A stretch of 64,000 nucleotides of DNA from Macrostomum lignano (GCA_002269645.1 NIVC01000712.1:372001-436000), one strand, 5' to 3'. Positions 1,356-64,000 are shown, counted from the first letter of the stretch. Made by a program: numbers and translations. The notes: generated from the letters alone by a model not told the origin.

Positions 1356-4059
1356 GATAGGCTTTCTAAGGTCGGCGATTATTCTTGATCATGAATTTAG
1401 CAGTTTGAGATCGAGTGCCAAGCGCAGGGAGTGAAATGCTGAGTTCAAGCTTACCACTGCCAGTGACTATTTTACAAATGCAGTATTTTTCGTCGGTTTT
1501 TATGCAATTTCAGTCCCTCCAGCTTCATATAGCTCTAAGCTATCGAATGTTTTTTTATTGAATTGAAGTTCCCTTTCGTAATTGCACGCTCTGGGAAAAA
1601 CCACGGACTTGCCGCGGAAGATTGATATTTTGTGTACTTTCAAGAGCTGCATTAGAAGTGTTTACCAAGTGTGTTTCGAATAGACTGAGTATACAGTAAT
1701 TCCATGGAATTGCCTCAGAAATTTAGTGTGCATTTTTACACTAAAGTGAGTGCCTGAAGCGTACTTAAGCAAGGGACAGACAGAGTTATACTGTACAGTA
1801 TTAGCTTTGTAGACTTGTGTTCAAAGACACATTAACAAGGTACGTACGTGAACGCAAAAAAATAAAAACAAGTTTATCTATTCTACTCTTTCATTTGCTG
1901 GATACGGCATAGTTGAAAATCTCTTTCCGAAATCTTTTCGGTTTGCTACGGAGTTGTTTTCTGTCAGTTTACTTAGATATGTTTATAATAGTAGAAACAT
2001 TTATCTCTTTATGTCACTCTACGGAAAAGGGTATTGGGATTTTACGCCAACTTATTCGAATACAAGCCTCTCGGATAAAAGAAGGATCGCATCTCTGGTC
2101 TTAAATATACCAACGGCCGCAACTTCAGAATACCATCACTGTTTCAGTTCACCCAGTGTGAACTGCCGGAATGACTTGGAGAACCCATGATAGCGAAAAC
2201 GAGATTGGGGACTTCAGTTCCAGCTTTACCTTTAGGCTGTTATAGGGGGCAAAGAGTGGTCGTGCCAAGTGTCGAAGCTCTATTCGGACTCAAGTGGCGT
2301 TAAACAGCTGTCCGTGCTCAAGATGGCGTGCCGTCTAGTCCGTCGCTTGCCAAGAATCATAATCGGAATTAGGACTTAGGCTAGGGAAGCCTAACAATGT
2401 ATTTGCATCGGAAGACCGATTGAACATGTCACATGGACAAATCGCGGCTGATTTGGACATTGAAGTGTCGGCGAGATGGCTTAGGAGCACAATGATCGAG
2501 CGAGATCGTCAGATCAACGACTAAGCTACAAGATCAGGCCAAATTGCTTCGTTTACCGCTAGTGTTTGCCACGCCTAAAGGTGGACCACGGGGCGAAAAA
2601 TAAAATAAGAAGAGCCCACTGAGTTGGCCTGCACCGGACCCCAAGAACCAGGTGTAACTTTAATATCTCAAGGAGCCTAGGAGAAGTGAGAATTCTCGAA
2701 ACTGAGAATTTATATTCAGAACTGATAAAACGATAGACATTTATTACAGCACAGACAGAGTCTTTAAGCAGCCCAGTTTTCAAAGTACATTTAAGCAGGG
2801 TAACTAACGAGTGTTCAATAAAGATTTGAGAGAAGAATACGAAGCAGACTAAAGAGAAAGAAACTCACCAAAAAATAGCGAAGACAGGTGATATCCGTCA
2901 AGAACAACAACTGAGATATACATGTAGAACAGTTTGTATTATAGCAGCAATCGGCTGTACGTGTTAGCTCGTACATATCTGAAATTTTAGTAATTGCTAC
3001 TGCAAAGTGCATTTCGTAAAGTCTCCAAAGGCTTATTTTTTAACTTTGGTTCTTACCCTCTACCCATTTATCTCAAAGGTGAAAAGAAAAGTGAAAGACA
3101 AGTCAGGGGTGAACTAAAGGCCAGTAACTCGACAGAACGAATGAACTTTTTCCCAATAACGTTCATTAGAATGTGAAAAAGTCAGCCACTGACTGCAGTA
3201 AATTTCAATCAAGTTTCAGTCGACCACAGGAAATCCACCGAAGTGACTTCATTCAGAGGTACCTACCGAGCAGTGGAGCTGGCTGTAGCATGCGCTGGCA
3301 GGCAGTTCGGGCATCTAGTTTGCACTCTGTGACCGCCATCCAGCCTATCCACTTCCCTCTGCTCGAGCACATCCCAACGTGCACTCAATGAACCGGAAAT
3401 CTGTGTTCTACCAGACAATAAATATACAGCCACATTCTATTTTTTCACCCTTTTGAGTGGCTAACTAACACTCGCAACAACCAGCCAGAGTTGCTCGCTA
3501 CACTGGCTAACCCGCTCATGTGGAAGATATATGGAAGATCATGTGGAAGATATCGTGGAAGATAAAGTGCTCAGGGTTTCCACTGTTTAGAAGCAAGGGG
3601 CAGAAGGGCGCACATTGATTGCCAGTGTGTGCTTCTGTGATAGCCTAGACAACTGCACTCTATCAGACAAGAATTAGCTCACAGCTAGAGGCAGAACGGT
3701 ATGAAAATAAGTATGCTCATATTTCAGCGTGCAAAAAAGTCTGGGGAACTTCGGGCATGTAAGTACAGCCTATTCCGATTGTCTATATAAACGTGAACGT
3801 GAAAAAATTACGTCTATACTTTCAGCTTCAAAACTAGGCGATAAAACAGCCTCAACCAACAGCAGTAAAAGCAAGTTGAGCCTTTATCCTGATATATTTC
3901 GTACGCAGCTCTCTGCTATTAAGCTGAGTTAGTATCTTCGATTCTCTAATCTTTAATACGTTCGGTAAGAACGTCTTTGGGTTTAAAGTAAGTGTCTTTC
4001 TGTAGGATCTAACGTAAATAAATACGAGTAGTTGCAGACACATATAGTCTCCTATTAAT

Positions 4060-4725: not shown

Positions 4726-4733
4726 TATAAAAG
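4726..4733 (+). promoter_or_regulatory. TATA box of the DNase II gene
   Basis: TATAAAAG 30 bp upstream of the ATG at 4763. Confidence 0.5.
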
Positions 4734-4762
4734 CTATACGCACATAGCATACAAAAACGCGC

Positions 4763-6362: not shown

Positions 6363-7820
6363 TCCAAAAAACTCAGGTAGCTATTGAACAAAGCTTTGAT
6401 GATCACAATTTTTATTTAAGAACTGTTGAAATAATTGAACGAATCAACTCAACATTTTAGAATTTTATATTTTTTCATTTTAACAAATATTATGCTAGTT
6501 TTATCACTCATCCACTGAAGTGTGCATAAGATATTCCATTCGATCAGTGATATTCGTTGATATATCTTTTCTTCAGGCTATGCAGAATTCCTTCGTTTAT
6601 CGTTCATTAGTGAACGAAAGGTTTAATATTTCCAGCATCTACTCCTTGTTACAATGTGATACATTCTTGCAGATGTGTCAAATGATTTTCGATTATTGCG
6701 ACCTCTCGATTCTTACGCACAGATAATTAAAGCACCTCGTAAAATATACATGTACTAGGTCATACTTATCTACTTTTTATCTCTAGGAAAAACGCGATGA
6801 AGTTGCAGGCATTCAATGTTGATGTGACAGAATTAGCCCCAGAGTTGCAGGTAGCTGGCATACGACTAAAGTGCGTACGAGTGCTGTGGGTGCGGGCAAC
6901 AGGCGGCACAGAGCGGGGCAGTGGGAACCCGATTAAAACTTGTGCAATTTCAGGTGCTCTATAGGCATTTGGAACTTCTTAAAAACACTTTGAAAGCGCG
7001 TAAAGCATCTTAAATGCTCCTTGGAAGCGACTGAAACGACTCTGACATCTGGCATAATGATTTCAGCAGAGGAATTTTTAAGACGTTTATATATGCCGAA
7101 CTTTCTCCTGTTAGAAGAAATACACCGAGAAAGCGCCTGATCGTCGCTTATTACGAAGCAAGCTGTCTTTCTAACAATCCTTGCTGGTTCTATCCTTGCT
7201 GATATTAGTTCCGACAATGTAGATTATAAATAAAACCAGAGGGCCTCTCAACGACTGAAATGTGTCTGATTAGCGCCACGAATTTTTAGGCTTAGTGACT
7301 CTGTAGCGACTTAAATCCGACTGAACCGCATAAAATCCCATATAATCTAATCTATAAAGTCTACTATTTTATCTGTAGTAAGACGCTTCTTAGACGCTTA
7401 TAAGGCGGTTTGTTCAGACGTTGCGGAGTCGTTACTTAGAAAGGCCTCCAATGTCTGAGCATTTCTATATTCCCTTTTCATCACGGAAATGCAGCTACGA
7501 CCTTAAGGCAGAGAGGCAAAAGACTCCGCGCGATTGAGCTTCTTGATATCCGGGTTTTTGGCTTTCTACAAAGCCGCTGTCCTGGGTCTTCAGCCATGTT
7601 CCTGTCGTCTCTAGTACTCTTTTTGACTGGTAGTCAATGAGTTCCGCATTGAGAATTTCGTTGGTGACGTCGAAATCGGCTATGGAGAGCTTCCAGGAGA
7701 CTTCTATAGCTTGTATTACGTGTTTTTAAACAATCGATTGCGGCTAAAATTTTGGCGCGTAAATTATCTTTGTTGCTACAAAGCTTATTCAACCGTACAT
7801 GTATTACTACCTGTAGTAGT

Positions 7821-9333: not shown

Positions 9334-10985
9334 GGTGCAAAACTGTGCATTCACTGTGATGCTCTGTGCGATGCAAGTCGCGTGACAAAATGAAATAAAA
9401 GTGCGCCTATATTAAAACACTTCAAAAAATTTGCCGTCTTAAGCGACTGATTAATTTTTACGAGTTGAATCCTTGCTTCAGCATTTCTGACACAGCAGTT
9501 TTGAAGTGTTTGCTAAGACGGGCTTTGCCTCCATGTGGAAACATTGTATCCAATTACTGTCTTCTAAGACCTAGGTTTTGCCGTTTGTAGAGTAGAGTTT
9601 GGTTAAACATTTTAGGCAGGACAGATGGCTCAACAAAACACGGCAGAGTTGGAAAATCGCATTCTAAAGCATATTGGAGCTGGTAACTAAGGCGGGCTGC
9701 TTAAATACTGTAACTTGATGTATGAGAAGAACAATAGCTACCAGACACAGCTAATACTATTCTTTGAGGGAATTTTGGAGGGTAAAACAGCCAGTGGAAG
9801 ACGGATTTGTTTTAAACAAATAAACTTAGAGAGCTGCAGAGCTTTAGCACATTCTACATGCAGTACCAGGGAATCAATATACCTTTTAAATTACGAAATC
9901 CCAGATGCTTGTTAAAATACTTCATCTTATTGAGGAGCGGCAATGATAAAAAAGTCTAATATGAAGCAAACTGAATACGACTGCACGAAAAAGTCAGAAA
10001 GCTTAGAAATTGTGTTTGCCATGACGGCTTTCGTTTTCGCATACAGACTCTAGCGATGTCTCCAGATCAAAAAAAGCAAGTTAAAACTTTCTGTCTTCAT
10101 TGTCGCTAAGGTACAAAGGCTAGAAGGATTTCTGTGAGATTTTCTCAATCCGCGAGTAGTTTTCTGTGTTTTGTACAGTGAATGTATTGAATTGCAAGCC
10201 GGATTAAAGGAAACAAATGCGGATATATTGACGACGTCCATTGCTTCCAGGGACATAGCCAGGAATTTGTATTTGGGGGGGGGGGCATCATTCGAGGCGC
10301 TCTTCATCGTGCCAGGGGGGCGAAACTGCTGCAAAGGAGGCGTCAAACATCCTTCCTGGCTTTAGTCCTGCCCAACAATTTTAGTGCGAAGAAGGAATTG
10401 CTTCTCCATGCAATTTTTTCTTGGTAGACAGAAGTGTACTAAGGGGCTCACTCTTTTTTGTGTCATCCACAAGTAGTCATCTAAAGAAAAAAATTTCAAA
10501 TGATACCTCCAAAATCCAGGAACCTTGAAAAAGCATGCCTTCTGCAAAACGAGTTGGGCTATATTAAATTCAGTCAGTTTAATTGGCCAATTATTTATCA
10601 ACAGGTGTCAAAATCCCATTGGATCAATCGTCGATAAGACTTCATTTTAATTGCATATTTTCTGAGTTTATGATTTTCTCACAGAAAATTTTTTTGACGA
10701 AGTTTGGCGCCTCCTAGAGCCTTATAATACACTCGAGCCCCTTGCTTTTTTCTGCCTCCTGCAAGAGAATCGTAAAAATGAAAATGTGACGTACATATTC
10801 ATGTCTTCAAGTGCTGTATGTGCAGGCTGTAGTTACTGATTTTCCAATAGATTTTAGACAATCGCCATGGGACCTAACCGGCCTAAACTTAGTCAAATCC
10901 CTGGTGTGCAAACTGCAAAGCATTGAAAGCTTTCGTGCTCTTTTTCTATGGAATACTGAATTGCCCGATGCCTGATGCAGTAAGC

Positions 10986-11730: not shown

Positions 11731-12256
11731 GATAGCAGGACTACTGACTACTTTTAGATGTTTGTGACCTAGCCCCCTAGTACATGTACTTAAAGCTACT
11801 TATAAAAATCTGCCTGCATCATAATGTCAGCTACTTCAACCACAGCCGGCGCACAAGTCCCGGGGAGAACAACTATGATCTTATCCCATGAAAATTGCCG
11901 CGTCATTAAGGCTTCATAAATTGAGCGATAACTGTTGCCTCATTGTTGAAGTAAGGGCAGAAGATGACGTTTCCAATACTCGTAACTCAAACAGTTTTCT
12001 GAGACCGTGTATACGCTCGTATTTATTTGATAAATTCAGCAAAATATATTGACAATTTCGTAGAAGTGTTGAGTTTTATTATTGACTCGATGAAAAATGC
12101 GCATTTTGTTTTTTATTCAAGCAACTTAGGTAGGCGCATGTAGTATTCATAGGTAGAAGAAAAGCATGAGAAAGTATTAGAACGCAAACTGATATGCGAA
12201 TATAAGCATTTAGAGAGAAATTTTATACGCTTTTTCAAGTTAGATCAACCTTAACT

Positions 12257-12987: not shown

Positions 12988-16183
<3,196 letters not shown>

Positions 16184-20710: not shown

Positions 20711-22245
20711 CGGAAATTTGGAATGTAAATTGACCCATTAATTCTGTCGACTTTTCTGTTTTTGAAGAATTAAAAAGCAGTTTAAAAATACTTGGAGTTT
20801 GAATCTTATGCAGACAGACAGGACATAAAAGGTACCAAATTATGTACAGATTCAATTATATAAACTTTTCAGAAAAAAGCTCACCACTTATTGCTGATAT
20901 GAAATAGTGCTCATTTCTTTGCACTGCAACGTTATCCTCCACTTGGACTCCAAGCCCGCTCTCGCATTCCAACGTGCCGTTCAGCATCGCGGCGCTGACC
21001 TGGAATCTGAACTGAGACGCCACGACCACAAAGGCCTGATTTTTGTCATCTTTTGCGACAGCTTTTTTTACCTGGAAATTGTTTAAAGGTCAGCAACGAG
21101 TAGCAATAAACACTAAAATTAATAGGCACAGTTGATCTCACGGGGCTGTAGTGTAGAAAGAGAAGTTATGAGTTCATCTCACATTCGTGCGATTTTCATC
21201 CAGACGCCACTCAGAGCTGGCAGAACTGATGCTGCAGCTGTGATGCAGTGCTGGGTAAGCCGGAGCTGATGTGACATTCACAGTGACGCTGCTGCCGCTG
21301 ACCCACACGGGTGACACCGATATTGTCAGGCTGGCAGGGGGAACTGAAATAAACATGTTGAAGTAATTGCAATATCAACTTCCAGGATACATATTTCTGA
21401 TTAAAACGCTCTCACATGAAATCCCAATAGTCTGCTCAATGCGCTCAGCAGGTCGGTCTGTCAGAAAGCAGCTGAGTGTCGCATCGTGCATTGCCGAGGT
21501 GGCTCTGAGTTCGAACACGGCAGGCTGCGTCTGGCTGTTCAGCTGCCGTGATGGAGAGTTTTATAAGAGAATTTAGCAAAGCTCCACACAATTCGAAATC
21601 TATTTAAAAAGATTAACGCACCTGTCTCAGTTGATGAGTCAGCTATACTTCAAGAGACAGCCAAGCGAGCCGTCAAGACAGCTCGAAACCGAGAGGCAGG
21701 CCAAGTCCCCAGCCTTCATGACTTGCAAGTTTTTAAGCGGACATTGCGAACTGTTCATCACGGTGAGGTTCAGTGGAGCAACAGGACCTAAAAAACCGTC
21801 ACGTCCTGTCACTCGATTGTCTTAAAAATCAACGAATCATTTAGAAGTAGGCAGACTGTTCATATTTTAATAAAGACCTGACAGTTTCATGGCACTCCAA
21901 CATAGCGGAGCTTTCGTCCAGCTCCTGACCAGCATGTACCGAACTGTGCTCTGAAGCAGAAAATACATGTACCCTTTCTTTTACTTTTATTGAAAGAAGC
22001 AATAAATAAATAATGCAATCCCGCACAGGTGCACTACGAGTTTGAGAAAAACGTTGCTACCTCCTTGTAAGCTCTTCCGAGCTGCTTCCAGCGGCTGCTG
22101 CTGTTGAAGGCCTCCCAGCTGGCGTCGCACGGATCCTCCAGCTGCAGCTCCAGTGGGAGGCTCGAGGCTCCGACCGCTGACACGGGCGAGCCGACCGGAG
22201 CTGCTGTGTGCCACTGGCCATCTGCAACACGAGTGCTTGGCTGCT

Positions 22246-22461
22246 AGCTGGTCTCACACTGTCTCAGAGTGCTAATTAGATGCTAGCTGGTCTCACACTG
22301 TCTCAGAGTGCTAATTAGATGCTAGCTGGTCTCACACTGTCTCAGAGTGCTAATTAGATGCTAGCTGGTCTCACACTGTCTCAGAGTGCTAATTAGATGC
22401 TAGCTGGTCTCACACTGTCTCAGAGTGCTAATTAGATGCTAGCTGGCCTCACACTGTCTCA
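22246..22461. repeat. 39-bp minisatellite GCTAGCTGGTCTCACACTGTCTCAGAGTGCTAATTAGAT, ~5.5 copies (X_A intron 2)
   Basis: Direct inspection. Confidence 0.95.
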
Positions 22462-23986
22462 AACTTTGTGTCCCAGACTCCCTCTGCCTCATCATGCATC
22501 ATGAGAATGAGTCGGTCAGCGTCACTCACCCCAGTCTCGAACGCTCACCGCCTCCAGCATCATCGGCTGCCTCAGCTGCATCACAAGCCACCGAGGCCCG
22601 GACCGCACAGCAGCAGGGAATCGGTTTGTCTCTGACTGCCGACTCTCCCACCAACGGCAGTGCGCACCGCTGGGTTGCCAGGTGCGCAGAACGTCAGCCC
22701 TGCTCAGCTGCACTGTCACTGCAACATGTTTGTTAAAAAGAACTCAGCTTTCGTGTCCGGCGCATGAAAAAACGGTTAATAAAGAGTTTGCTTCAAGTTG
22801 TTAGCCAAACTTTTCCAGCTTACGATTTTCGTTGTCTTGTGTGCAGTTTGAGAACGCCTTGAGGACCTGCAGACTGAGAACGAGAAATAGCAGAAGCTTC
22901 CTGCACCGCCAGCAAGCCATTCGGGCGTTGCAGTTTATTTACAAACGCTGACGGTTGAAAGCGTCTTGGCTGAAAATCGTTACCATTTTTAATTGATTTC
23001 GGACCGGTGTTTTACGCAGAAACGACTGGTCTTGGACTGGTTAATCACGAGTGGGTGTCTCTGCAATCGCTGCATCTAAAATAAGTATACGGCCATCTAA
23101 ATTGGGTTTGATATAACTATATTTATAATTTCGTCTCCGAAAGCAGCCAAATCGACTCTAATTGGATTGCAACTATGTAAACCAGGGGTCCAAACATTCG
23201 AGATAGCTTGTGTATTTATATTTTCAGATCAGTGGAAAAACGCCTTCGAATAATTCGCTTGTATTCGTAGCTAGACAAGCAAAGCGAGTTTTCTGCACAG
23301 AAAGCCATCCTAAAGTCACTAGTATTTTCGCGTTGTTTTTCCGACTAATTTTACTAAAAGTAGTGAAGTAAGGAAAACTCTAGCAGTAATTATTTGCGGG
23401 AAAAATTCAATTTACTGAAAACAGTGGCTACACACAATAAAGTAAAAAAGTGTGTGAAATGGATGCCAGTAACTACAAATTTGCACGAGTTTAAAAAGAA
23501 ACAAAAAATATATTTACAAATTTACAAAAGTCGAATTGTCGAAAATTTAAATACAACTTTCCTTTTTTAGTTTGACTTTACGATTAAAAGCTAATAGTGA
23601 GATTCGGCAAAAAGTTTATTGTGAGGGATTAAAAATATGAATAATGCACAAGAGAAATACGAGAATGCTTGCTTCTCAAAATTAGGCTGATCGGGCAGTT
23701 TTTGTGACGAAAGCTCACAATGGGTAAAATGTAAAAATCCAATATTATGATTATAACGAGAAATAAAAAAAAAAACATTAATTATCGTAAACCTTCACTA
23801 CTGGTGATAAAATTGACGATACGCAATTAAGTATACGTATACTAAAGAACCCATGTTGAGTTGAGTCTACAGTGGACTCGAAAAAGTCAGCAGCCATTAG
23901 TTTAGAAATAATCTACAAAATATATTTATACATTTTGGTTTACTTTCAAAAACTTTTTGCAATTTTTCGTTTTTTTGCGTAAGCGT

Positions 23987-24237
23987 CAGGAGCGTTGCCA
24001 CCCCACCTTTGTTGACCTGTTGTGGAAATCAAGTATTTTGCTTCAGGGCGCCAAAATGAGTGCCTGCGGTGCCAAGATGAGTGTCTGCGGCGCTAAGATA
24101 AGTGCCTGCGGCGTAAAAATGATCGCTGACAACACCGATTCTGAAAAGAATGTACATGTAGAAATTTAGTCATGAACATGTACATGTAGAATTCTTGGCT
24201 TTCTCCACCCACTATAAAATCCATGGCGACGCCTTTG
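23987..24237. mobile_element. hAT-type MITE, copy in unit A
   Basis: TIR CAGGAGCGTTGCCA / TGGCGACGCCTTTG; 8-bp TSD GTAAGCGT at 23979-23986 and 24238-24245. Confidence 0.75.
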
Positions 24238-33600: not shown

Positions 33601-36600
33601 GGCGATCGAGATTCTTCAATTTGTGAGTCCAACGCTCCAACTACTAGACCAAACAATTCTGTCAACTGTTCCGATTTTGAAGGACCAAAAAAGCACTTTG
33701 AAAATATTGGGAGTTAGAATCATATGCAGACAGACAGGGAATCAAAGGGTACCAAATCAGACAGCTGAATTGCAAACAAAAATGCAACTATATACAAATT
33801 CAGTTATTGAAACTTTTTTTGAAAAAAGCTTACCACTTATTGCTGATATGAAATAGAGCTCATTTTTTTGCACTGCAACGTTTTCCTTCACTTGGTCTCT
33901 AAATCTGCCCTCGCATTCCAACGTGCCGTTCAGCATCTCCGCGCTGACCTGGAATCTGAACTGAGACGCCACCGCCACCAGGGTCTGATTTTTGTTCTTT
34001 TTTGTCACAGCTGATTCTAGCTGGAAGTTGTTTAAAGGTCAGCGATAATTGACAGACAGCAGTGAAACTGTACAATTATGTTCAGCAGAAAGTCATGAGT
34101 TCATCTCACATTTGTGCGGTTTTCATCCAGACGCCACTCGGAGCTGGCAGAACTGATGCTGCAGCTGTGATGCAGTGCTGGGTAAGTCGGAGCTGATGTG
34201 ACATTCACAGTGACGCTGCTGCCGCTGACCCACACGGGTGACACCAATACTGACAGACTGGCAGGGGGAACTGAAACATAAGTATGATGAAGTAAATGCA
34301 ATATCAGCTTCCAGAAAACCCATTTTCATTAAATTCTCTCACATAAAATCCCAATAGTCTGCTCAATGCGCTCGGCAGGTCGGTCTGTCAGAAAGCAGCT
34401 GAGCGTCGCATCGTGCATTGCCGAGGTGGCTCTGAGTTTGAACACGGCAGGCTGCGTCTGGCTGTTCAGCTGCCGTTGTAGAGAGTTTTATAAAAAAAAT
34501 TAGCAACGCTTCACACAATTCGAAATCTATTTAAAAAGATTAACTCACCTGTCTCAGTTGATGAGTTGAACCATTGCTGTACTCCAAGAGACAGCCAAGT
34601 GAGCCATCAAGACAGCTCGAAACTGTAAGGTACGCCAAGTTTCCAGCCTTCATGGCTTGCAGGTTTCTAATCGGACATTGCGAACTGTTCATCACGGTGA
34701 GGTTCAGTGGAGCAACAGGACCTAAAAAATCGTCACGTCCTGTCACTCGATTGTTTTAAAAATCAACGCATCAGTTAGAAGTAGGCAGACTGTTAATATT
34801 TTAATAAAGACCTGACAGTTTCATGGCACTCCAACTTAGCGGAACATTCGTCCGGCTCCTGACCAGTATGTACCGAACTGTGCTCTGGAGCAGAAAATAC
34901 CCTTTCTTTTACTTTTATTGAAAGAAGAAATAAATAAACAATGCAATCCCGCACAGGTGCACTACGAGTTTGACAAAAACGTTGCTACCTCGTTGTAAGC
35001 TCTTCCGAGCTGCCTCCAGCGGCTGCTGCTGTTGAAGGCCTCCCAGCTGGCGTCGCACGGATCCTCCAGCTGCAGCTCCAGCGGGAGGCTCGAGGCTCCG
35101 ACCGCTGACACGGGCGAGCCGACCGGAGCTGCTGCGAGCCACTGGCCATCTGCAACACGAGTGCTTGGTTGCTAGCTGGTCTCACACTGTCTCACAGTGC
35201 TAATTAGCTGCTAGCTGGTCTCATACTGTCTCAGAGTGCTAATTAGATGCTAGCTGGTCTCATACTGTCTCAGAGTGCTAATTAGCTGCTAGCTGGTCTC
35301 ATACTGTCTCGGAGTGCTAATTAGATGCTAGCTGGTCTCACACTGTCTCAGAGCGCTAATTAGATGCTAGCTGGTCTCACACTGTCTCAGAGTGCTAATT
35401 GGCTGCTAGCTGGTCTCACACTGTCTCAGAGTGCTAATTAGATGCTAGCTGGTCTCACACTGTCTCAGAGTGCTAATTAGATGCTAGCTGGTCTCACACT
35501 GTCTCAGAGTGCTAATTAGATGCTAGCTGGTCTCACACTGTCTCAGAGTGCTAATTAGATGCTAGCTGGTCTCACACTGTCTCAGAGTGCTAATTAGATG
35601 CTAGCTGGTCTCACACTGTCTCAGAGTGCTAATTAGATTCTAGCTGGTCTGACACTGTCTCATAGTGCTAATTAGATGCTAGCTGGTCTCACACTGTCTC
35701 AGAGTGCTAATTAGATGCTAGCTGGTCTCACACTGTCTCAGGGTGCTAATTAGATGCTAGCTGGTCTCACACTGTCTCAGAGTGCTAATTAGATGCTAGC
35801 TGGTCTCACACTGTCTCAGAGTGCTAATTAGATGCTAGCTGGTCTCACACTGTCTCACAGTGCTAATTAGATGCTAGCTGGTCTCACACTGTCTCAGAGT
35901 GCTAATTAGATGCTAGCTGGTCTCACACTGTCTCAGAGTGCTAATTAGATGCTAGCTGGTCTCACACTGTCTCAGAGTGCTAATTAGATGCTAGCTGGTC
36001 TCACACTGTCTCAGAGTGCTAATTAGATGCTAGCTGGTCTCACACTGTCTCAGAGTGCTAATTAGATGCTAGCTGGTCTCACACTGTCTCAGAGTGCTAT
36101 TTAGATGCTAGCTGGTCTCACACTGTCTCAGAGTGCTATTTAGATGCTATATAGCTGGTCTCACACTGTCTCAGAGTGCTAATTAGATGCTAGCTGGTCT
36201 CACACTGTCTCACACTTTGTGCCCCCGACGCCCTTTGCCTCATCATGCATCATGAGAATGAGTCGGTCAGCGTCACTCACCCCAGTCTCGCACGCTCACT
36301 GCCTCCAGCATCATCGGCTGCCTCATCTGCATCACAAGCCACCGAGGCCCGGACCGCACAGCAGCAGGGAATCGGTTTGTCTCTGACTGCCGACTCTCCC
36401 ACCAACGGCAGTGCGCACCGCTGGGTTGCCAGGTGCGCAGAACGTCAGCCCTGCTCAGCTGCACTGTCACTGCAACATGTTTATTGAAAAGAACTCAAAT
36501 TTCGTGTCCAGCGCATTGAGAACGGTTTAGATAAATGGTTTGCTTTAAGTTCTTAACCAAAATTTTTCAGCTTACGATTTTCGTTGTCTTGTGTGCAGTT

Positions 36601-36672: not shown

Positions 36673-37655
36673 TTATCTGGGCGTTGCAGGTTATTCACAA
36701 ACTGATTCACTGACCGTTGAAAGCGTCATGGCTGAAAATCGTTACCATTTTTAATTGATTTCATACAGGTGTTTTACGCAGAAACGACTGGTCTTGGACT
36801 GGTTAATTCCGAGTGGGTGTCTCTGCAGTCACTAGGTCTAAAATAAGTATACAGCCATCTAAATTGGGTTTAATATAATTATATTTAAAATTTCTTGGAT
36901 TCAGTTGAAATGAAACTTGATCCAAATTGGATCGCTACTTGTTGATAATTTCGTCTCCGAAAGCGGCCAAATTGACTGTAATTGGATTGCAAGCACATGT
37001 AAACCAGGGGTCCAACACATCCGAGATAGTTTGTGTATTTATATTAGCAGTTCAGTTGAAGAAAATATTACGCCCTCGAATATTTACGCTTGTAGCTATT
37101 AATAAAAAGAGAGTTTTCTGTCCAAAAAACTATCCTAAGGTCATCAATATACTATTTTCGCTTAATTTTTTTACGATTAATTTTACTGAAAGTAGTAATG
37201 AAGGTAAAAAAATTGACAGTAAATAAATAAAAATGTACAATGGCCATAAAGTAAAGTAAAAAATATAGTATGGTGCAGTCTCTATTTTATTTGACTTACA
37301 TGAAAATTTTTGGGTTATGCATCGCGTTTGAGCGAATGATGGAAAATCGTAGATGCCAGTAACTACGAGCTACTAAATTTGCACGAATTTAAAAACCCAA
37401 TGAAAAATATACCTTAAAAATTGACAAATTTACAACAATCGTAAAAAAAAAGTTAAAAAAGTACGTGTTCCACTTTCATTTTTTGTCACTAACAGTGGAA
37501 TTTATTAACTTTAAAAGCGCAAATATTTGTACATGTATACATACATACATACATGTACACCGCCGCAAAAGAAAGCAAAAGGAAAAGGGGGCAGCAAAAA
37601 CGGAAGAGCAAAAAAAGGGGGAAAGAAACGGAAATGTGAGAGCGTGGCGGCAGTG

Positions 37656-40600
37656 TCAGAGCACTCTCCTTCTGGCTTGCTCCCTTAAGGCAGCCGCAGC
37701 GTTGGTCTGGCCGATGACACCGGCGTCAGCCAGCAGGCAGTCCACGTACCGGCGCGTCCTGGCCTGCCCTCGGCGCCAGGGGCCCCGCAGCGTGAGCAGC
37801 AGGACGTCCTGCACCGGTTCAGGGCAGTAGGTTTCCGCGCGGATCACGTGGCCCGCCAGCTGCAGCCGCCGCCGCCGGATGGTCTCGCTGGGTGGTCGCA
37901 GGCCGGCTCGTCGGTAGAGGGCCGCGTTCGAGACCACCTCAGGGTAGGAGATGCCGAAGGCCGCGCGCAGCAGGCTGGAGTGGGCCGCGTCCAGCCGCTT
38001 CTCCAGCGTCTCGGTCAGCGTCCACGTCTCGGCGTTGTAAGTCAGGACGGTCTCGACCACCGCCTGAAACAGCCGAGACCTCAGGCGATCTGGCAGCGCG
38101 GCGCTCTGCAGAACAACCCGGACTGAGCGGAAGGCCGCCCAAGCCAGGCCTCTGCGTCGCGCCAGGTCCTCCTGAACGCTGGGCACCAGACCGCCGAGGT
38201 ACGTGAAGCGCGTGCAGCGGGGTAGAGGGGCCGCGTGACCGTCTGCGCCGCGGCAGGTGATATTGGCAGGCAGCTCCGCTGGCACCGTCAGGACCTCCGT
38301 CTTGTCGGTGATAACAACCAGGCCGACCGTAGCCGCTATCGCCACCAGGCTGTCCAGCATCCGCTGGGCTCCATCCGCCGTGGAGGCCAGCAGCGCCAGG
38401 TCGTCGGCATAGCCCAGCAGCGACAGTCTCTTCTCTGGATGGCGGCTGCTCGTGCGCCTGCACAGCATGAAGCCGTCGGCGTCGGATGGAAGCGCAGTCC
38501 GCAGCACCCAGTCGAGGACCAGCACGAACAAGAAGGGCGCTAGCGTGTCGCCCTGCAGCACTCCAGATGTTGTACTGAATGGGTCCGACAGCCCGTCGGG
38601 CGTCACCACGGCGGCTTGAGTGTCCTGGTAGAGCGCCATGACTGCGCTGACCAGGCGCTGGGGCACGTGGTAAGCCCGGAGCACCGGCACAAGGGCGCCG
38701 CGCGCCACCGAGTCGAACGCCTTTCTGAAGTCAACGAAGACACAGATCAGCGTCGCCTGGCGGGTGCGCGCCTCCTCGATTGTCCTCCTGAGGGCAAGGA
38801 TCTGGGTCGCTGTGCCCCGGTGTGGCCGGAAGCCGTTCTGCTCGTGCCGCAGAAACGGGTCCAGCACCGGTTGCAGCCGCGTCAGCAGGATCTTGTTGAA
38901 GAGCTTCGCGGCGCAAGACATCAGCGAGATGCCCCTATGTTCTTCTTTCCGAGTTGTGCCGGGCTTCTTTGGGATGGGGATCATGTGGGCCGTCGTCCAC
39001 TCAGTTGGGGCTGCACCCCCGTCAAGTACGCGGTTCATCACACCGGCGACCGCACGGGCCACCGGCAGGACTCGCAGCGCCTCGACAGGGATCTCATCCG
39101 GGCCGGCCGCTCTTCCACCAGGGGACTTCTTCGCCTGCAACACCACCTCGTCCAGAGTAATGGGGCTGACGTCGAAATCCTCCTCCTTGGGCAGGGCCAC
39201 TTCCGGCGGCAGCGGCATCTCCGCCTGCAGCACCGGCGGCGGCGCGTTCACGATGGCGCCGAAAAAGTCCCGCAGCTCGTTCCGGCGGGCCTCCGCCGTG
39301 TCGCCGGGGAGGTTGAGGCTCGTGCGGCTCTTCCTCCCGGTCAGCGCGTTCACAGCGCTCCACACGGCGCGGCGCTTGCCGTCGTGCCCTGCCGTTGTCA
39401 CCGTCCTGATGGTCTCTTCTACGGCGGCCTGTTGTCCTTGCTCATAGGCGGCTGCGAGGGCCGCCTCGGCTTCGTCCACCTCCGCAGTCCTGCCCGCCCG
39501 TCGCAGCTGCTCAAGCCTCAGCCTCGCACTTTGCACTTCCGGGTCCACCTCCCAGACCGGCCGACCTTTCTGCAGGGGCTTCACCAACGGTAGGGTCCAC
39601 TCCGCAGCAGATTGGACGGCCGTGCAGATCTCGGGGTAGTCGGCTTCCTTCTTGCCGTCGAGGGCATCCACAAACGCGCGGGCGAAGCGAACCTGGGTCG
39701 CATCGTCACGCAGAGCCCGGAAGAAGTGCTTCGGCTTCCGCTTGGGCGGCCGGTAGAGCGGGTCCTTCAGCTTGATGTCGCAGAAGAGCAGCTTGTTGTC
39801 GGACTTCGGCGCCAATGGCATGATGGTATCGCAGTTGGTCACACGGCCACGCTCTCGAAAGTGCAGCAGCACGTGGTCCAGCTGCGCCAGCCTCGTCGTG
39901 GCATTCCGGCGGCGGTTGTTGTTGCGCCGCGGCCGCTTGCAGCCGGCAAAGGTTGCCAGCCGCTGCTCGGGTTTCCGGAACCACGTGTTCATCGACACCA
40001 TGTCATGCCGAGCCACGAAGTCGGTCAGCGCCTCGTTGTTGGCATTCTCGCGCGGGGTCACGAAGGGGGCCCGGTCTGACCTGCGCATGACAGCGTTCAG
40101 ATCACCGAGCACGATCACCGTGTCCCGTTGTGCCACAGCCTCCACCTGCCCGGACAAGAACTCGAAAAAGACACGAGCTTCATCGGGGTGGGCAGCTGTC
40201 GGCGCGTAGGCGCAGAAAATGTGGGCGCTCCGACTCCTCAGCCGCAAGTCGATCCGCAGCAGCCGAGGGGACAGGCTCTGGCAGCACACACTCTGTTGCA
40301 GCTTTGGCCCGGCCAGCACTCCTACTCCTCCATGACCTCTCTCGTCCGCTGATGTGTACAGGAGGCTCCAGCCAGCTCCCAGCTCTTCACGCTGGAGGCC
40401 GGGGCCGGCCACGATAGACACCTCCTGCAGAGCCACCAGGTCCATCTTCGTCTCCTGAGCCAGCTTTGCCAGCAGGCCCTGGCGCCAGTTCTCCTTGAGG
40501 GTCCGGCAGTTCCAGGTTGCCAGCCGAAGGGGTGCTCTGGTACGGCTGGGGCCCGATGCTGTTGGGCCTCGTGGTCCCCGGCGCCACCCGGAGGATCCAG

Positions 40601-40769
40601 GGCCTCGGCCTCCCGCCTGCCTGCGCGCTTTGCTGCTCCATGGGCACGACTGCGCCGGTTGCGCTCTCTGCGCCGCTGGGTGCGGCGGGCAGCACTGCGC
40701 TGGCCGCGGGGGGTCTTGGCCTTGCCGCTGTTGGCTGCCGCAGCTTGAGGGCGCGGCACTCCAAGCCAA
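37656..40769 (-). CDS. LINE ORF2: apurinic endonuclease plus reverse transcriptase (1037 codons open, no upstream AUG)
   Basis: LATWNCRTL, LQEVS, VLGDLNA, LDHVL; RGISLMS, QNGFRP, FVDFRKAFDSV, GVLQGDTLAPFLF, YADDL, FTYLGG. Confidence 0.95.
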   Translation of the reverse strand: MAWSAAPSSCGSQQRQGQDPPRPAQCCPPHPAAQRAQPAQSCPWSSKARRQAGGRGPGSSGWRRGPRGPTASGPSRTRAPLRLATWNCRTLKENWRQGLLAKLAQETKMDLVALQEVSIVAGPGLQREELGAGWSLLYTSADERGHGGVGVLAGPKLQQSVCCQSLSPRLLRIDLRLRSRSAHIFCAYAPTAAHPDEARVFFEFLSGQVEAVAQRDTVIVLGDLNAVMRRSDRAPFVTPRENANNEALTDFVARHDMVSMNTWFRKPEQRLATFAGCKRPRRNNNRRRNATTRLAQLDHVLLHFRERGRVTNCDTIMPLAPKSDNKLLFCDIKLKDPLYRPPKRKPKHFFRALRDDATQVRFARAFVDALDGKKEADYPEICTAVQSAAEWTLPLVKPLQKGRPVWEVDPEVQSARLRLEQLRRAGRTAEVDEAEAALAAAYEQGQQAAVEETIRTVTTAGHDGKRRAVWSAVNALTGRKSRTSLNLPGDTAEARRNELRDFFGAIVNAPPPVLQAEMPLPPEVALPKEEDFDVSPITLDEVVLQAKKSPGGRAAGPDEIPVEALRVLPVARAVAGVMNRVLDGGAAPTEWTTAHMIPIPKKPGTTRKEEHRGISLMSCAAKLFNKILLTRLQPVLDPFLRHEQNGFRPHRGTATQILALRRTIEEARTRQATLICVFVDFRKAFDSVARGALVPVLRAYHVPQRLVSAVMALYQDTQAAVVTPDGLSDPFSTTSGVLQGDTLAPFLFVLVLDWVLRTALPSDADGFMLCRRTSSRHPEKRLSLLGYADDLALLASTADGAQRMLDSLVAIAATVGLVVITDKTEVLTVPAELPANITCRGADGHAAPLPRCTRFTYLGGLVPSVQEDLARRRGLAWAAFRSVRVVLQSAALPDRLRSRLFQAVVETVLTYNAETWTLTETLEKRLDAAHSSLLRAAFGISYPEVVSNAALYRRAGLRPPSETIRRRRLQLAGHVIRAETYCPEPVQDVLLLTLRGPWRRGQARTRRYVDCLLADAGVIGQTNAAAALREQARRRVL

Positions 40770-40825
40770 CCTTGGCTATGCTCCGGGGCGATGCTCTGCC
40801 CAGGGGTGCCAGGAGGTCGCGGCAT
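40322..40825 (-). CDS. Putative short Arg-rich ORF1 of the LINE, overlapping ORF2
   Basis: ATG at 40825 directly inside the element 5' end; RSAARRTQRRRERNRRSR basic tract. Confidence 0.45.
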   Translation of the reverse strand: MPRPPGTPGQSIAPEHSQGWLGVPRPQAAAANSGKAKTPRGQRSAARRTQRRRERNRRSRAHGAAKRAGRREAEALDPPGGAGDHEAQQHRAPAVPEHPFGWQPGTAGPSRRTGARACWQSWLRRRRWTWWLCRRCLSWPAPASSVKSWELAGASCTHQRTREVMEE

Positions 40826-40844
40826 ATTTATACGCCAGGGGCGT

Positions 40845-41180
40845 ATAAATAAGATGGCTCATAAATAAGATGGCTCATAAATAAGATGGCTCATAAATAA
40901 GATGGCTCATAAATAAGATGGCTCATAAATAAGATGGCTCATAAATAAGATGGCTCATAAATAAGATGGCTCATAAATAAGATGGCTCATAAATAAGATG
41001 GCTCATAAATAAGATGGCTCATAAATAAGATGGCTCATAAATAAGATGGCTCATAAATAAGATGGCTCATAAATAAGATGGCTCATAAATAAGATGGCTC
41101 ATAAATAAGATGGCTCATAAATAAGATGGCTCATAAATAAGATGGCTCATAAATAAGATGGCTCATAAATAAGATGGCTC
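40845..41180. repeat. 16-bp minisatellite ATAAATAAGATGGCTC, ~21 perfect copies
   Basis: Direct inspection. Confidence 0.98.
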
Positions 41181-41563
41181 GTACATGTACATGTATAATG
41201 AGGGATAAAAGTATGAATAATGCATAACAGAAATTTGAAAATGCTTGCTTTTACAATGAGGCCGAGGGCAGCTTTTACAACAAAAGTTCACAATGGGCAA
41301 AAATTAAAAATTCAATATTGTGATTATAATGCAAATCGAAGTAAAAATATTCATCGTAAACCTTCACTGGTGGTGATAAAATTGACGATACGCTAGCGTA
41401 TACTAAATAACCCATGTTGAGTTGAGTCTACAGTGGACTCTGAAAAGTCACCAGCCATTATTTTAGAAATAATGAACAAAACACACAAAATATTAATGCA
41501 TCTTGGTTTCGTTTCAAATTCTGTAGACTTTCTAATTTTTCGTGCACATTTTTGTGTAAGCGT

Positions 41564-41878
41564 CAGGGGCGTCGCCACCGGGGGAAAAGGGGGACATGTC
41601 CCCCCAGTAAAAGTTTTGCCAATGCCAATGCTTTGATCCCCCACGCCACTTTTGTCGACTCGTTGTGGAAATCGAAAATTTTGCTTCAGGGCGACAAAAC
41701 AAAAAAGACCAAAAAAGGCCTGCGGCGCTAAAACGAGTGCCTGTGACGTCAAAATAATCGCTGACAAAACCGATTCTGAAAATAGTGTACATGTAGAAAT
41801 TTAGTCATGAACATGTACGTGTAGAATTATTGGCTTGGTCTCTCTCTCTCCTCCATAAAATCCATGGCGAAGCCCCTG
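41564..41878. mobile_element. hAT-type MITE, copy in unit B
   Basis: TIR CAGGGGCGTCGCCA / TGGCGAAGCCCCTG (13/14 match); 8-bp TSD GTAAGCGT at 41556-41563 and 41879-41886. Confidence 0.82.
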
Positions 41879-42000: not shown

Positions 42001-44068
42001 TCATACATGTACGAACTTCAACTGCATGAGACTTATTTGCTCACTCTGTGAGTCATTGATATGAAACGGTGTTTTTATAGAACGCACGGTGCTAGGACTT
42101 GAGCTTCTTTGACTCGCTGATGAGTGGCAATGGAGCACAAAAAGTACGAGACCGAGTACGAGTGAAATTGTGACTACTACGGCGCTAGCAAGCCCGATGA
42201 ACAAAGCGATACTAGGCTGCCAGCCAGTGGCTTTTGTATTCGCAATAACCGTCGTGCCATTAATTGAACTTGCTGAGCTCATCACGGCTGAGCTTTTTTT
42301 CATCTGCTTTAATATTTGGATCATCTCTTTCGAGTAGCCGTGCGTGCAGCTCGCAGTCTCCGGTAAGCTCAGCAGCGACAGCATCGGGCTGCTGCAGTCA
42401 ACGAACTCGACCACAGGTCTGTCTGATTCAGCAAGTATCAGAGTGGCACACCTGCCAGTAGTAGACTCTGGCGGCACTCTGGTCATAAAAGAAACAATTT
42501 TTAACGAAATTTAATACTCAATTTTATGTGAACTAAGAGCAATAAGTTTTACTTGAAGTCGGCGGGTAGCTGAATTGGTAGGCAACCATTGTCCCTCTTG
42601 GACATAAAGGACATCACGGTTTTGTCAGTCTTGAGAAACATGCCTAGACGCAACGGCTGGCTCAGACTCAGGGGCCGTCTGTACGGGATTTCCTTAAGCT
42701 TGGCTTCGTCTAAAATTGAAATTAATAATCTGATTTGATTATTTCATTACACTATTGGCGTTTGCCATTAGCTTGAACTGCTCACTAGCAGCGATGAACT
42801 GACTGATATCACTTGAGTTCTCGAAGCTGGCTAGCTGCACACCGCCTCTGATGTTTAACAGGCTGGTTTGAATGTCCTGCGGCACTTTTGTGACATAGTA
42901 GCAACTGCCTCTAAAGTTGAGCATGTCGAAGGCGCAGTGCCCGCTGCTGGGCAGCACAATTCTCAGGCCCACTGCACTGGCTGACTCAGCTTTCGAGTCC
43001 TTTGTTGATTCTACGACGATGTAGGCTCTATTTTGGGTTTGAGGAAATTGCTCCATCAGAGCGATATTTTGAGTCTTTTAATGGTTTAGTTTCTATTCAA
43101 AGGACTTTTACTGCCTCTGGACAAGAGACAGGGGTTTCAGCACCAGGGGTTTTGGCACCAGGGGTTTTAGCACCAGGGGTTTTAGCACCAGGGGTTTTAG
43201 CACCAGGGGCGCCAGCACCAGGGGCGCCAGCACCAGGCGCGCCAGCACCAGGGGCGCCAGCACCAGGGGCGCCAGCACCAGGGGCGCCAGCACCAGGGGC
43301 GCCAGCACCAGGGGCGCCAGCACCAGGGGCGCCAGCACCAGGGGCGCCAGCACCAGGGGCGCCAGCACCAGGGGCGCCAGCACCAGGGGCGCCAGCACCA
43401 GGGGCGCCAGCACCAGGGGCGCCAGCACCAGGGGCGCCAGCACCAGGGGCGCCAGCACCAGGGGCGCCAGCACCAGGGGCGCCAGCACCAGGGGCGCCAG
43501 CACCAGGGGCGCCAGCACCAGGGGCGCCAGCACCAGGGGCGCCAGCACCAGGGGCGCCAGCACCAGGGGCGCCAGCACCAGGGGCGCCAGCACCAGGGGC
43601 GCCAGCACCCTAGGTCTGCAGACTCTAGACCCAAAGAGTACCGAAAACGGAATTCCTATTCTTCTCTGTTACTTTATCGGAAGATTCTCAGGCAATAACT
43701 AATCATATGAAATACAAAATATTGTATTCGGAATTACTGACCCAGGTCGCAGGGTGACGGCTTGAACGAATCCAGCTACCAAATCGATATTAGTCGGAGA
43801 TCCATCGGACCACCTTATGGTGACTGAGAGCTTGGCTTTGATCTGGCTTCGAATGGCATCTCCGATAGGCAGCCCTATTAAATAGATCGTGATGGGTTCT
43901 TTAACGTCACGAAACCGAACTTCCCATCGACAGTGCCTGTTTGCGGTTCTTTTCTCTCCAGCTTCGTCTTGGGTCGTTGGCAGCAGTTTTTCGTCACGGT
44001 TGTAGTAGCCGTCCATCTCTATTTTGACAGTGTGCTCATCCACACAGTGGTAATTGGCTGTATAAACA
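42001..44068 (-). CDS. Family Y receptor, copy Y3 (CUB-like, C-type-lectin-like, TM); 5' signal exon not resolved
   Basis: Exons 43742-44068, 42786-43027, 42553-42709, 42001-42478 are phase-compatible and open. HCVDEHTVKI..HCRWEVRF; HCAFDMLNFRGSCYYV..QLASF; LRLGM; RCATL..DCSSPM; TM IALFIGLASAVVVTISLVLGLVLFVL. Confidence 0.78.
43135..43610. repeat. 15-bp minisatellite AGCACCAGGGGCGCC (main variant), ~31 copies
   Basis: Direct inspection; paralog of 29410-29910. Confidence 0.97.
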
Positions 44069-45449
44069 CTGAAATTGTATAAAAATTTTAAGGCTGATTT
44101 AGATTTTGGCCTTGTATTAACTGAAAAAACAGGGACTATAAATAAGGTCTCCATGGTGTCTCGCATGGGACAGAGGTAGCCCAAAAGTTAACGGGTCCAG
44201 CATTCACACCACGAGAGCCACTGGTTGGTTTGAGTTCGACTCCATTCGATGGTTTGTGTACGGAAATTTACCAGTGGGCTGTCGTGTGATTTACACACAT
44301 GAGAGTCAACCCAGTTGCGCGCTTGTATTGCTCAGGAGCCAGTAAATATATGGCTATTAGCCAAAAGAAGTGCTTTCACACTTCGCTTACAGTCTGTAGA
44401 CTGTCGGATACAGCAGCAGCAGTATCTGTGCGCTGAATTTCTGAAGTCAAAGTTTTGTAAAAAGTTGGCAGTGAAAAGCAAGGCTATACTCGTAGGCTGC
44501 CCAATAATTTCACAATAAACCAATAATACATGTAGCTTTATTTCACAATAAAGTAATGCGATTTTTTGAGGGTTATAACTGTAAAACATGTTAGGTGTTG
44601 TTACACATGTAATTGACAGTTTATTATTCTCCTTGCACTGTACCCATTAATTAGCATAAAAACAGCTAGAATGGAGTGGAAGTTACCAAGCAAAACACTG
44701 AGCTGTTTATTTGGTGCAAAATACTCGTAGAAGTAAAAAAACAGTAAACAGGCCTGGATTAAGCAGTCACATGATGCAAATCTCGTGACTTATTATAAGG
44801 AACCTTAGATCGTTCAGGCTAAAAATATACACACACTGCTGTACCCGTCCTTCGCACGTACTTCAGTACTGCAGTTCTATATTTAGCCACACTGTACACT
44901 GGTCCAATGTACAGACAAAAAGGGAAGTTTGTTGCAGAGTACGGGGCTGCTAGAAACTGTTTACGCATTATAAATTTAACGAAAACTGTGTATTTCAGAG
45001 ATTTAATTTTTTGCTACATCTTTCCGATTTTTATGTTTGCCACAAAAACTGCAGCTCTTTTAAGTCTTCATTAGCTGAGAGTAAGGTGTTTGCCAAGTTT
45101 ACAGTAAATCTACATGTAATGAAATCTAGCACGCCAAAATTAGCGTAATTTTTAAAACGGAGACTGTGCATTTTGCAATACGCAAAAATGCAAGCATTTT
45201 TCAACGAATCAATCAAAATACATGCGTTAAAAAAAAACTTACTCGTGTCAACATCATGGCGGTTGATTAAGAGTTGGCCGCATGCCTTTCTCACCGCACA
45301 TGCCTTGGGGTAGCTACATGCCTGAATTCCTGCTTCTTTGCGGGCAGTTCCTAAGGCCATTACTATATAGAGCAAGGCCAGCCAATAAGAGTGCTCGTAC
45401 ATGTACATGGCGAATTCAGCATGCCAGTGAAGTATGAGACAGACCTATA

Positions 45450-53540: not shown

Positions 53541-54154
53541 TTAAAAAAAATTTTCTTTTCGATTTTTGTTTGATAAAACTGTTGAAAAATGCGTTACACA
53601 TTTGCACTTACATGTGCCAGTACGTCGCAATCAATAGCAGGAAAATAATCGATTGCATTATCTAAAATATAAAAGTGACAACGGGTCGTGGTTAAATGTT
53701 CGCATGATTTCGCTGAGTACATGTACGTAGGGACAACAAAGTACACGCACTAGATCGTACATTCACTTAGAGAAGTTCCCTTTTAAACTGTACATTTAAG
53801 CGTACTTTGGACAAAAGCACTGCTTTGCTCTACTTAGTTTGACGGTTGAAATTAATTAAGTTAACTTCACAATGAGGAATGCTTTTTACGGGCTATAGAA
53901 ATCTTGTTTAATAAACTCACCGCGACTTCAGGTAGATAAGAAGACCAACTGAGAAAGAAAACTATAAAATCAAAAGGCTTCGCTATGCATTGCTTGGTCC
54001 GGTAATAAAAGTACGAGCGTACAATATTTGTGCTGTTTTACGCCCTCAGTAACTGTAAGTGGGCGCTTTAAAAGCGAAAGCGAAAAGTTATAGAAACAGA
54101 CTTCTTTTTCAAAGCCAATGAGAGAATACATGTAGTATGAATGTAACAATATTG

Positions 54155-63474: not shown

Positions 63475-64000
63475 TACATGTACATATCGTCGCAGAAAAA
63501 ATAGAAGCCGGCCCAATTCTCACTCCGCAAAGGTCTCAGCAACAGCAGCTGGTAGCAGTTTTCAACAGCAACGGAACCTGGGCAACAATAATAGCAGTAT
63601 ACGTTGTCAGCCAGTCTCAGCGAGTCAAGAGGCAAAGACAACGTAACAGGGCACGTTTCAGGGCCTGGGCGCAAACGTACATGTATGCCTCACCATCGGC
63701 AGTGTCCAGGGCGCCAGCATCAGCCAGCAGGCAGTCGATGAAGCGCCGAGTGCGCGCCTGTTCCCGCCGGTAGGGTGCCTGCAGCGTGAGCAACAGCACC
63801 TCATGCACCGGCTGCGGGCAGTAGGACTCGGCTCAGATGATATGGCCTGCCAGATGAAGCCTCCGACGGCGCAACAGTTCGCTGGGACGGGACATGCCGG
63901 TGCGGCGATAGAGTGCGGCATTGCTGACGTGCTTGAAGCTAATCTTGAAGGCGGTGCACAGCAGGCCAGCGTGCGCCGCATCGACCTGCTGTTCGAGCGA
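63475..64000 (-). mobile_element. 3' end of a second, diverged RTE-like LINE (continues beyond the window; contains a stop codon)
   Basis: VSNAALYRRTG..RRRRLHLAGHII-stop-AESYCPQPVHEVLLLTL..QARTRRFIDCLLADAG aligns with the ORF2 C-terminus at 37656-38000. Confidence 0.85.

Follow-up and report, generated by a model that had tools for sequence, protein, structure and literature searches.

What process has placed one exact 8-bp palindrome, TACATGTA, at so many positions of a single Macrostomum lignano locus is the question raised by the stretch of DNA analysed here (64,000 nucleotides of NIVC01000712.1, positions 372001-436000; hereafter the window). Macrostomum lignano is a hidden polyploid with a genome very rich in repeats (PMC5730564), and it carries TA-duplicating Tc1/mariner elements (PMC10379824 supplement). 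The initial annotation of the window had counted 21 occurrences of TACATGTA and had read them as footprints in which excision of a Tc1/mariner element turned a plain TA into TA-CATG-TA. All 21 occurrences were recovered, every one at its listed position. The description of the change as TA to TA-CATG-TA was right, and a second word, TACGAGTA/TACTCGTA, follows the same pattern, as do two further 6-bp differences in which one copy has TA and the other has TA-N4-TA. This second word, the extra indels and a LINE retrotransposon with the palindrome at its junctions are what the present analysis adds.

In 100 dinucleotide-preserving shuffles of the window, TACATGTA appeared 0.81 times on average and four times at most, as compared with the 21 observed. 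Given that site 41788 is the paralogue of 24153, that 41182 and 41188 overlap, and that 37530 and 37550 lie in one LINE tail, the number of independent loci with unique flanks is about 17. Masking that removed tandem arrays and paralogous blocks kept 46.3 kb, in which 18 copies stood against 0.44 expected, a 41-fold excess making TACATGTA the top complex 8-mer of 22,537; against a maximal-order Markov expectation the count was 21 versus 12.7. The 24 one-mismatch neighbours of the word, when pooled, were at background (18 observed versus 17 expected), indicating that an exact word is generated and not a degenerate motif. CATG by itself was not enriched in the window, ACATGT outside TACATGTA was barely so, and no variants of the CATG word comparable to those of the second word were found there, the CATG word being nearly invariant. 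The 9-bp word TACATGTAC occurred 23 times counting both strands (0.39 expected), and the next outward base, with half-sites pooled, was C 20 times and A twice among 40 cases. The next pair was complementary at 6 of the 21 sites, which is the chance level; a palindromic extension of TACATGTA was rejected, the G and C flank preferences being independent half-site effects. Clustering of GTAC around the sites was also considered and was set aside as a weak signal driven by two sites. Direct repeats of 13, 10 and 7 bp flank sites 44527, 58429 and 45111, respectively, and were rejected as a general feature of the sites, their frequency being not significantly above that at control positions. Our literature search found no paper on TACATGTA in Macrostomum.

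The second most enriched complex 8-mer, TACGAGTA/TACTCGTA, is also of the TA-N4-TA form. It was observed 10 times, five per strand, against 1.02 expected, a 10-fold enrichment that 0 of 100 shuffles reached, and its contexts are unique bar one paralogue pair (19778/32768). Longer relatives of this word exist as well: TACGAGCGTA was observed three times with 0.07 expected, CACGAGCTCGTA once, and TACGAGC was about twofold enriched. Taken as candidate end-joining products of CGAG/CTCG ends, these words amount to five copies of TACGAGTA, five of TACTCGTA, three of TACGAGCGTA and one of CACGAGCTCGTA, small numbers whose spectrum of variants would fit the end-joining of such ends. The features on which the following sections of the argument draw are collected in Table 1.

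Table 1. Positions of the two words, their relatives, empty homologous sites and LINE copies (window coordinates except where L001, the homologous piece of NIVC01000958.1, is named)
Feature	Position	Strand	Remark
TACATGTA	2919..2926		unique flanks; L001 has the word too
TACATGTA	6747..6754		word kept in an 85%-identical stretch; L001 homology ends immediately to the right
TACATGTA	7796..7803		L001 without homologous stretch
TACATGTA	11781..11788		context AGTACATGTACT
TACATGTA	21964..21971		unit A, index site of the initial annotation; 6 bp longer than unit B
Plain TA, empty site	34898..34899		unit B, homologous to 21964-21971
Two TACATGTA, 20 bp apart	24153..24188		unit A
TACATGTA	41788..41795		unit B, paralogue of 24153; no independent event
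TACATGTA	44527..44534		within a 20-bp stretch between 13-bp direct repeats
TACATGTA	45111..45118		exact match
TACATGTA	53718..53725		context GTACATGTACGTA
TACATGTA	54127..54134		exact match
TACATGTA	58429..58436		within a 30-bp stretch between 10-bp direct repeats
TACGAGTA, first copy	4023..4030	+	exact match
TACGAGTA/TACTCGTA copies	11977, 13078, 13758, 19778	-, +, -, +	exact match
TACGAGTA/TACTCGTA copies	32768, 44487, 44722, 51770, 52290	+, -, -, +, -	exact match
TACGAGCGTA	54012..54021	+	one of three copies
TACGAGCGTA, other copies	12012-12021, 58317-58326	-	exact match
CACGAGCTCGTA	47690..47701	+	single copy; one base off the 12-bp palindrome TACGAGCTCGTA
TACGAGTA, extra 6 bp	L001 13145-13152		plain TA at window 9588..9589
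TATTCGTA	23262..23269		unit A; plain TA in unit B (37093-37094); one base off TACTCGTA
14-bp TCATACATGTACGA	42001..42014		unit B only; TA at the unit A junction; contains site 42004
LINE1	37530..41195	-	3.6-kb insertion in unit B; absent from unit A
LINE2, 3' part	63475..64000	-	runs past the window end; 61% amino acid identity to LINE1
TACATGTAC then GAGCACTCTTATT	45384..45409	-	26 nt match the LINE1 5' junction at 92%; site 45398

Homologous copies of parts of the window allowed the words to be compared site by site. A 21-kb piece of NIVC01000958.1 (L001) is colinear with window positions 1-18065, and window 1-7000 aligns with L001 4691-11463. Over the first 5.5 kb or so the identity is 99.2-100%, beyond which it falls suddenly to 85-91%; the switch lies inside a DNase II gene, with many indels beyond it, and the ORF of this gene (5313-6362) has 80% identity to a Macrostomum lignano protein encoded on NIVC01000958.1. 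Judged from the alignment, L001 is a partly diverged second copy of the locus, and the identity switch in the DNase II gene resembles a boundary left by gene conversion or recombination between homeologues. The window also holds a tandem segmental duplication of ~13 kb, with unit A at ~16.6-29.9 kb and unit B at ~29.9-43.6 kb being 78-93% identical. Both units have the same minisatellites in differing copy numbers. More than 20 minisatellite arrays take up roughly one fifth of the window (~11.7 of 64 kb in masked arrays), and a 39-bp minisatellite is found at 22242-22461 (5.6 copies), 35170-36212 (26.6 copies) and 61469-61922 (11.6 copies). An uncharacterised membrane-protein gene family is represented by ORF 24351-24821 in unit A and ORF 42001-42486 in unit B, with further ORFs related to this pair at 12988-13404 and 48848-49309; a database search for homologues of ORF 24351-24821 returned none. 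Only unit A contains a Gypsy-type retrotransposon (25100-29050), with a gag-like ORF and a 787-aa RT-RNaseH-integrase ORF, and because these ORFs are open the insertion is probably recent. A 734-bp stretch at 8385-9118, which L001 does not have, includes a WSC-domain ORF (8588-9022) with a signal-peptide-like start.

L001 contains three copies of TACATGTA within its 21 kb. Sharing of the 2919 site is uninformative because the region is 99% identical. Two of the four TACATGTA sites that are point-comparable between diverged copies, 6747 and 24153/41788, were kept at 80-85% local identity, and one-base differences were seen at 24181/41816, where the unit B counterpart (41816) reads TACGTGTA with one mismatch, and at L001 13415 versus window 9855. 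Two further TACATGTA sites differ between copies by whole-block indels. The motif sites evolve neutrally, with no conservation above the neutral rate between diverged copies. To the right of 6747 the window has 281 bp where L001 has a 36-bp stretch with a 13-bp duplication. In L001 (11445-11495) this stretch lies right of the shared TACATGTA and has 13 bp (GTAAAATATACAT) directly duplicated, with 9 bp of filler between the copies; the 281 bases of the window are unrelated to it. The place is a rearrangement hotspot at a motif site. The 281-bp stretch was considered as a repeat and rejected, its sequence being unique.

Indels of at least 3 bp were listed from the A/B and window/L001 alignments. 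Nine of them were 6 bp long, and three of these nine were differences between a plain TA and TA-N4-TA; a random 6-bp indel would take this form in ~0.7% of cases, and at least three of nine would do so by chance with a probability of about 3e-5. One of the three is the site at which the initial annotation had claimed an exact CATGTA gain in unit A. There unit A reads AAAATACATGTACCC at 21964 and unit B reads AAAATACCC, a clean 6-bp difference inside a 308-bp alignment of 93% identity; the difference stands as claimed, but its direction is unpolarised. The same applies to the other two, because no third copy or outgroup covers the three sites. All three indels show the TA context of a Tc1/mariner footprint: the added bases have a TA at either end, and the homologous empty site is a plain TA. 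The 14-bp block TCATACATGTACGA is not a simple TA-N4-TA unit; it alters the C-terminus of ORF 42001-42486.

Six of the TACATGTA sites (37530, 37550, 41182, 41188, 63475 and 63678) lie inside two LINE copies or at their junctions, and four to six of the 21 can be counted as LINE junction or tail sites. LINE1 has an intact ORF of 1037 aa with an apurinic-type endonuclease domain (Exo_endo_phos, 9e-10) and a reverse transcriptase domain (RVT_1, 6e-29), and its 5' end consists of 21 perfect 16-bp repeats (40845-41180); from the intact ORF and the identical repeats the element can be judged young. Written in LINE orientation the 16-bp unit is GAGCCATCTTATTTAT, with GCCATCTT as a YY1-like core. It is present just once in L005, a relative from another organism, and the array in LINE1 may be a monomer-type LINE promoter. 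The 3' tail of LINE1 reads ...GGTG-TACATG-(TATG)3-TA, and TACATGTAC abuts both the first base of the element and the end of its tail (sites 37530, 37550, 41182 and 41188), which looks like a 9-bp target duplication. Unit A has no LINE and no TACATGTA at the corresponding position, where it is only 78% identical. The 3' end of LINE2 reads ...CGACGA-TATG-TACATGTAC (site 63475), and TACATGTAC is the junction word common to the 3' and 5' ends of LINE1 and the 3' end of LINE2, the two copies examined. Given that the motif covers ~0.3% of positions, its presence at both of the two LINE 3' junctions cannot be chance. A TACATG unit is next to a TACGAG unit at 42004, 45398 and 51770, as well as at the LINE1 5' junction. 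When LINE1 is delimited by the nearest TAs (41177-41195 and 37530-37557), it has CGAG at its start and CATG at its end, the two enriched N4 fillers, and none of the explanations considered here accounts for this start and end. In LINE2 a further TACATGTA at 63678-63685 lies in the C-terminal coding part, has no LINE1 counterpart, and may have arisen by in-frame insertion of 6 bp into a mobile element. Relatives of LINE1 in metagenomic and Logan contigs (55-71% amino acid identity) have (TAA)n, (TTA)n, (TTG)n or (ATTTCT)n tails, indicating that short-repeat tails are a family trait; all LINE homologues for which DNA was obtained are from other organisms. The solo TACATGTA sites were considered as truncated LINE copies, and this was ruled out because no matches to the LINE 3' UTR were found elsewhere and the solo sites have no other LINE sequence.

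The initial annotation had suggested a search for TA-flanked elements with CA...TG ends at orthologous sites in other haplotypes, and a search for such elements returned none in the window or in the 21 kb of L001. It was run as an inverted-repeat search (TA-flanked, 8-nt exact seed, inward extension) together with repeat finding, and elements with CATG/CA...TG or CGAG/CG...CG ends were both absent from the 64 + 21 kb. Pairs of motifs were tried as the two ends of one element and were rejected, having only 9-13 nt in common and aligning past the motif no better than shuffles. No transposase or other Pfam domains were detected in the ORFs of 43-64 kb, no site with an element in place was seen in the window, its internal duplication or the 21-kb L001, and within the 85 kb no element had termini equal to the extra bases. 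The earlier statement that the window holds no such transposon overlooked a mobile element bounded by TA/CATG...CATG/TA at 37530-41195, which is a LINE and not Tc1-like.

To account for the data, there must be a process by which 6-bp blocks of fixed sequence are written at TA. We give an even chance to the proposal that TACATGTA and TACGAGTA/TACTCGTA are excision scars of TA-targeting cut-and-paste elements and that a LINE lands on the scar word. According to this proposal, the differences between copies would be insertions, a transposase would have made them, and its cleavage would have a 4-base stagger. Each scar would comprise the duplicated TA target plus the element's four outermost bases, left behind when the excision break was rejoined. 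Excision of an element with CATG ends would expose two self-complementary 4-base overhangs whose perfect annealing would give a uniform TA-CATG-TA, and CA...TG ends cut with a 2-base stagger would give TA-CATG-TA too. Overhangs from CGAG...CTCG ends would pair at the outer bases alone and would be resolved into TA-CGAG-TA or TA-CTCG-TA, with repair now and then yielding longer joins such as TACGAGCGTA and TACGAGCTCGTA. The CATG word would thus be left as one product and the CGAG/CTCG word as several because CATG overhangs, being self-complementary, can be rejoined in sticky-end fashion. Likewise, scars would pile up while element copies stay few because the transposition is non-replicative. 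A young LINE family, with (TATG)n-TA at the end of its RNA, would insert at TACATGTAC and duplicate the word at its junctions, its tail pairing with the nicked word so that the LINE would land there.

How much of the Tc1/mariner interpretation survives can be stated from these results. Its 6-bp form agrees with the 6-bp excision footprint of Minos, a Tc1-family element (PMC10992017), and it gains from the second word and the additional indels; the element, the transposase domain and the filled site that would go with it did not turn up in the searches described above. Half scars at background frequency, a 14-bp block at 42001 that departs from the simple form, and the placement of four to six of the 21 sites at LINE junctions also weigh against excision scars. 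Tc1/mariner excision is plausible as the mechanism, backed by the second word and the extra indels, rather than demonstrated. With the TA context present and a matching element absent from the 85 kb, the words are candidate rather than established members of the Tc1/mariner footprint class. The responsible element families are hypothetical because the family described in M. lignano ends in CTGGG.

Because LINE1 is bounded by TA/CATG...CATG/TA and LINE2 ends on the same word, the LINE itself can be put forward as the writer, its reverse transcriptase adding hexamers at nicked TA; a milder version has the LINE family specialised in homing to scars left where DNA transposons excised. The LINE endonuclease would nick TA, the reverse transcriptase would copy the last unit of the RNA tail (UACAUG) in a telomerase-like manner, and upon abort the flap would re-anneal through the terminal TA, adding exactly 6 bp with no full insertion. 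Full insertions would then prefer the word because it pairs with the tail. Both LINE copies end in TATG-TACATGTAC and the 5' junction of LINE1 carries the word too, as this would have it, and LINE1 with its intact ORF and 21 identical 5' repeats is young. Its relatives all have short-tandem-repeat tails, one of which is a hexamer, (ATTTCT)n, and the flank past the word keeps the hexamer phase above chance (C at 50%, then A). The adjacency of TACATG to TACGAG at the LINE1 5' junction, 45398, 51770 and 42004 also speaks for a LINE writer, as does the CGAG beginning and CATG finish of TA-delimited LINE1, which the excision-scar proposal must put down to LINE targeting plus coincidence; and solo sites free of other LINE sequence are what tail-only events predict. 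However, the second word would need the LINE 5' end or an unseen LINE family with another tail, TACGAGCGTA and the near-palindrome CACGAGCTCGTA cannot copy one RNA end, and the case is drawn from two LINE copies. We know of no precedent for 6-bp insertions written by a LINE, and we regard this origin of the words, the main rival to excision scars, as unlikely, though worth keeping in sight.

A host origin would have the fixed 4-base fillers put in, and TA duplicated, by a TA-specific nuclease or by the dedicated repair that the initial annotation had offered as an alternative; it would suit the exact words, their TA context and the lack of a candidate element in 85 kb. It is hard to reconcile with two unrelated fillers and with longer palindromic forms that resemble element ends; to our knowledge no repair route adds a fixed tetranucleotide, and we consider a host origin quite improbable. 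That TACATGTA is instead a selected palindromic protein-binding site, its function in promoters or insulators being the reason for its enrichment, strikes us as very improbable: the word comes or goes as a 6-bp block at TA and not by point changes, its locations include LINE tails, 3' regions and the end of a coding sequence, diverged copies retain it no better than under neutrality, and the non-palindromic second word behaves alike. Set against this are the exact palindromy of TACATGTA with its symmetric flank preference, three sites that adjoin CCAAT boxes, one site upstream of a TATA-like box, and the use of the word as a promoter element in Phytophthora (PMC11134190). Finally, an artefact of composition or repeats, be it (TACATG)n slippage, CpG decay of TACGTGTA/TACACGTA or a single repeat family, could point to two sites that are (TACATG)2 and to one paralogue pair that is TACATGTA versus TACGTGTA. 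Yet the flanks are unique, the enrichment outlasts masking, CATG and ACATGT outside the 8-mer show no real enrichment, and CpG-containing neighbours are at background, so that such an artefact is barely credible and is already largely refuted.

If the words are excision scars, the two most over-represented 8-mers of this sequence would be a fossil record of cut-and-paste transposition in which scars far exceed elements, and past hops could be counted directly. The scars would also be a source of in-frame 6-bp gene insertions, because a related insertion changes the end of the coding ORF at 42001. Two undescribed element families, one with CATG and one with CGAG ends, would be predicted, and the LINE would count as a retrotransposon with a dispersed 9-bp word, possibly the scars of another element, as its target. 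If the LINE were the writer, this would be a novel form of genome mutagenesis by a reverse transcriptase, with a LINE family seeding the genome with its own preferred landing word. On either reading, the words are simple markers with which recent mutational activity can be traced in this regeneration model, whose polyploid genome is difficult.

Among known systems, the DD37E/Mosquito family of M. lignano, the only Tc1/mariner family documented there, with CTGGG ends and 35 copies (PMC10379824 supplement), is like the proposed elements in residing in the same genome, in duplicating TA and in moving by cut-and-paste. Its CTGGG ends mean that it cannot have made CATG or CGAG scars. Tc1/Tc3 of C. 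elegans and Sleeping Beauty resemble the proposed elements in duplicating TA and in having element end bases kept after staggered cleavage; Sleeping Beauty differs in its 5-bp-type scars, TACAGTA/TACTGTA, which are at background frequency in the window, as are half scars (TACATA/TATGTA), which show no enrichment. For Minos from Drosophila hydei, Arca et al. in 1997 reportedly described a scar made of TA and the terminal CGAG or CTCG, produced by heteroduplex repair in which the two 4-base overhangs are said to pair at their outer bases and the inner mismatch to be repaired. The second enriched word here, TACGAGTA/TACTCGTA, has the sequence of that reported scar. The 6-bp addition at TA, composed of a TA duplication and four bases, is common to Minos and the sites described here, and the presence of variants for the mismatched overhangs versus a single uniform product for CATG fits the heteroduplex repair model. 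By contrast, the main word here is CATG and not CGAG, and the evidence consists of putative scars alone, at a density near one per 3 kb, the 85 kb containing no such element. On the retrotransposon side, the LINE copies are similar to R1/Tx1-clade elements that insert into microsatellites and to elements with UnaL2-type slippage tails in combining an endonuclease and a reverse transcriptase with a short-tandem-repeat tail. Although the target of the two copies seen here is a dispersed 8-9-bp palindrome and not a microsatellite or a multicopy gene, they share with target-specific non-LTR retrotransposons the property that independent copies have one junction word able to pair with the tail.
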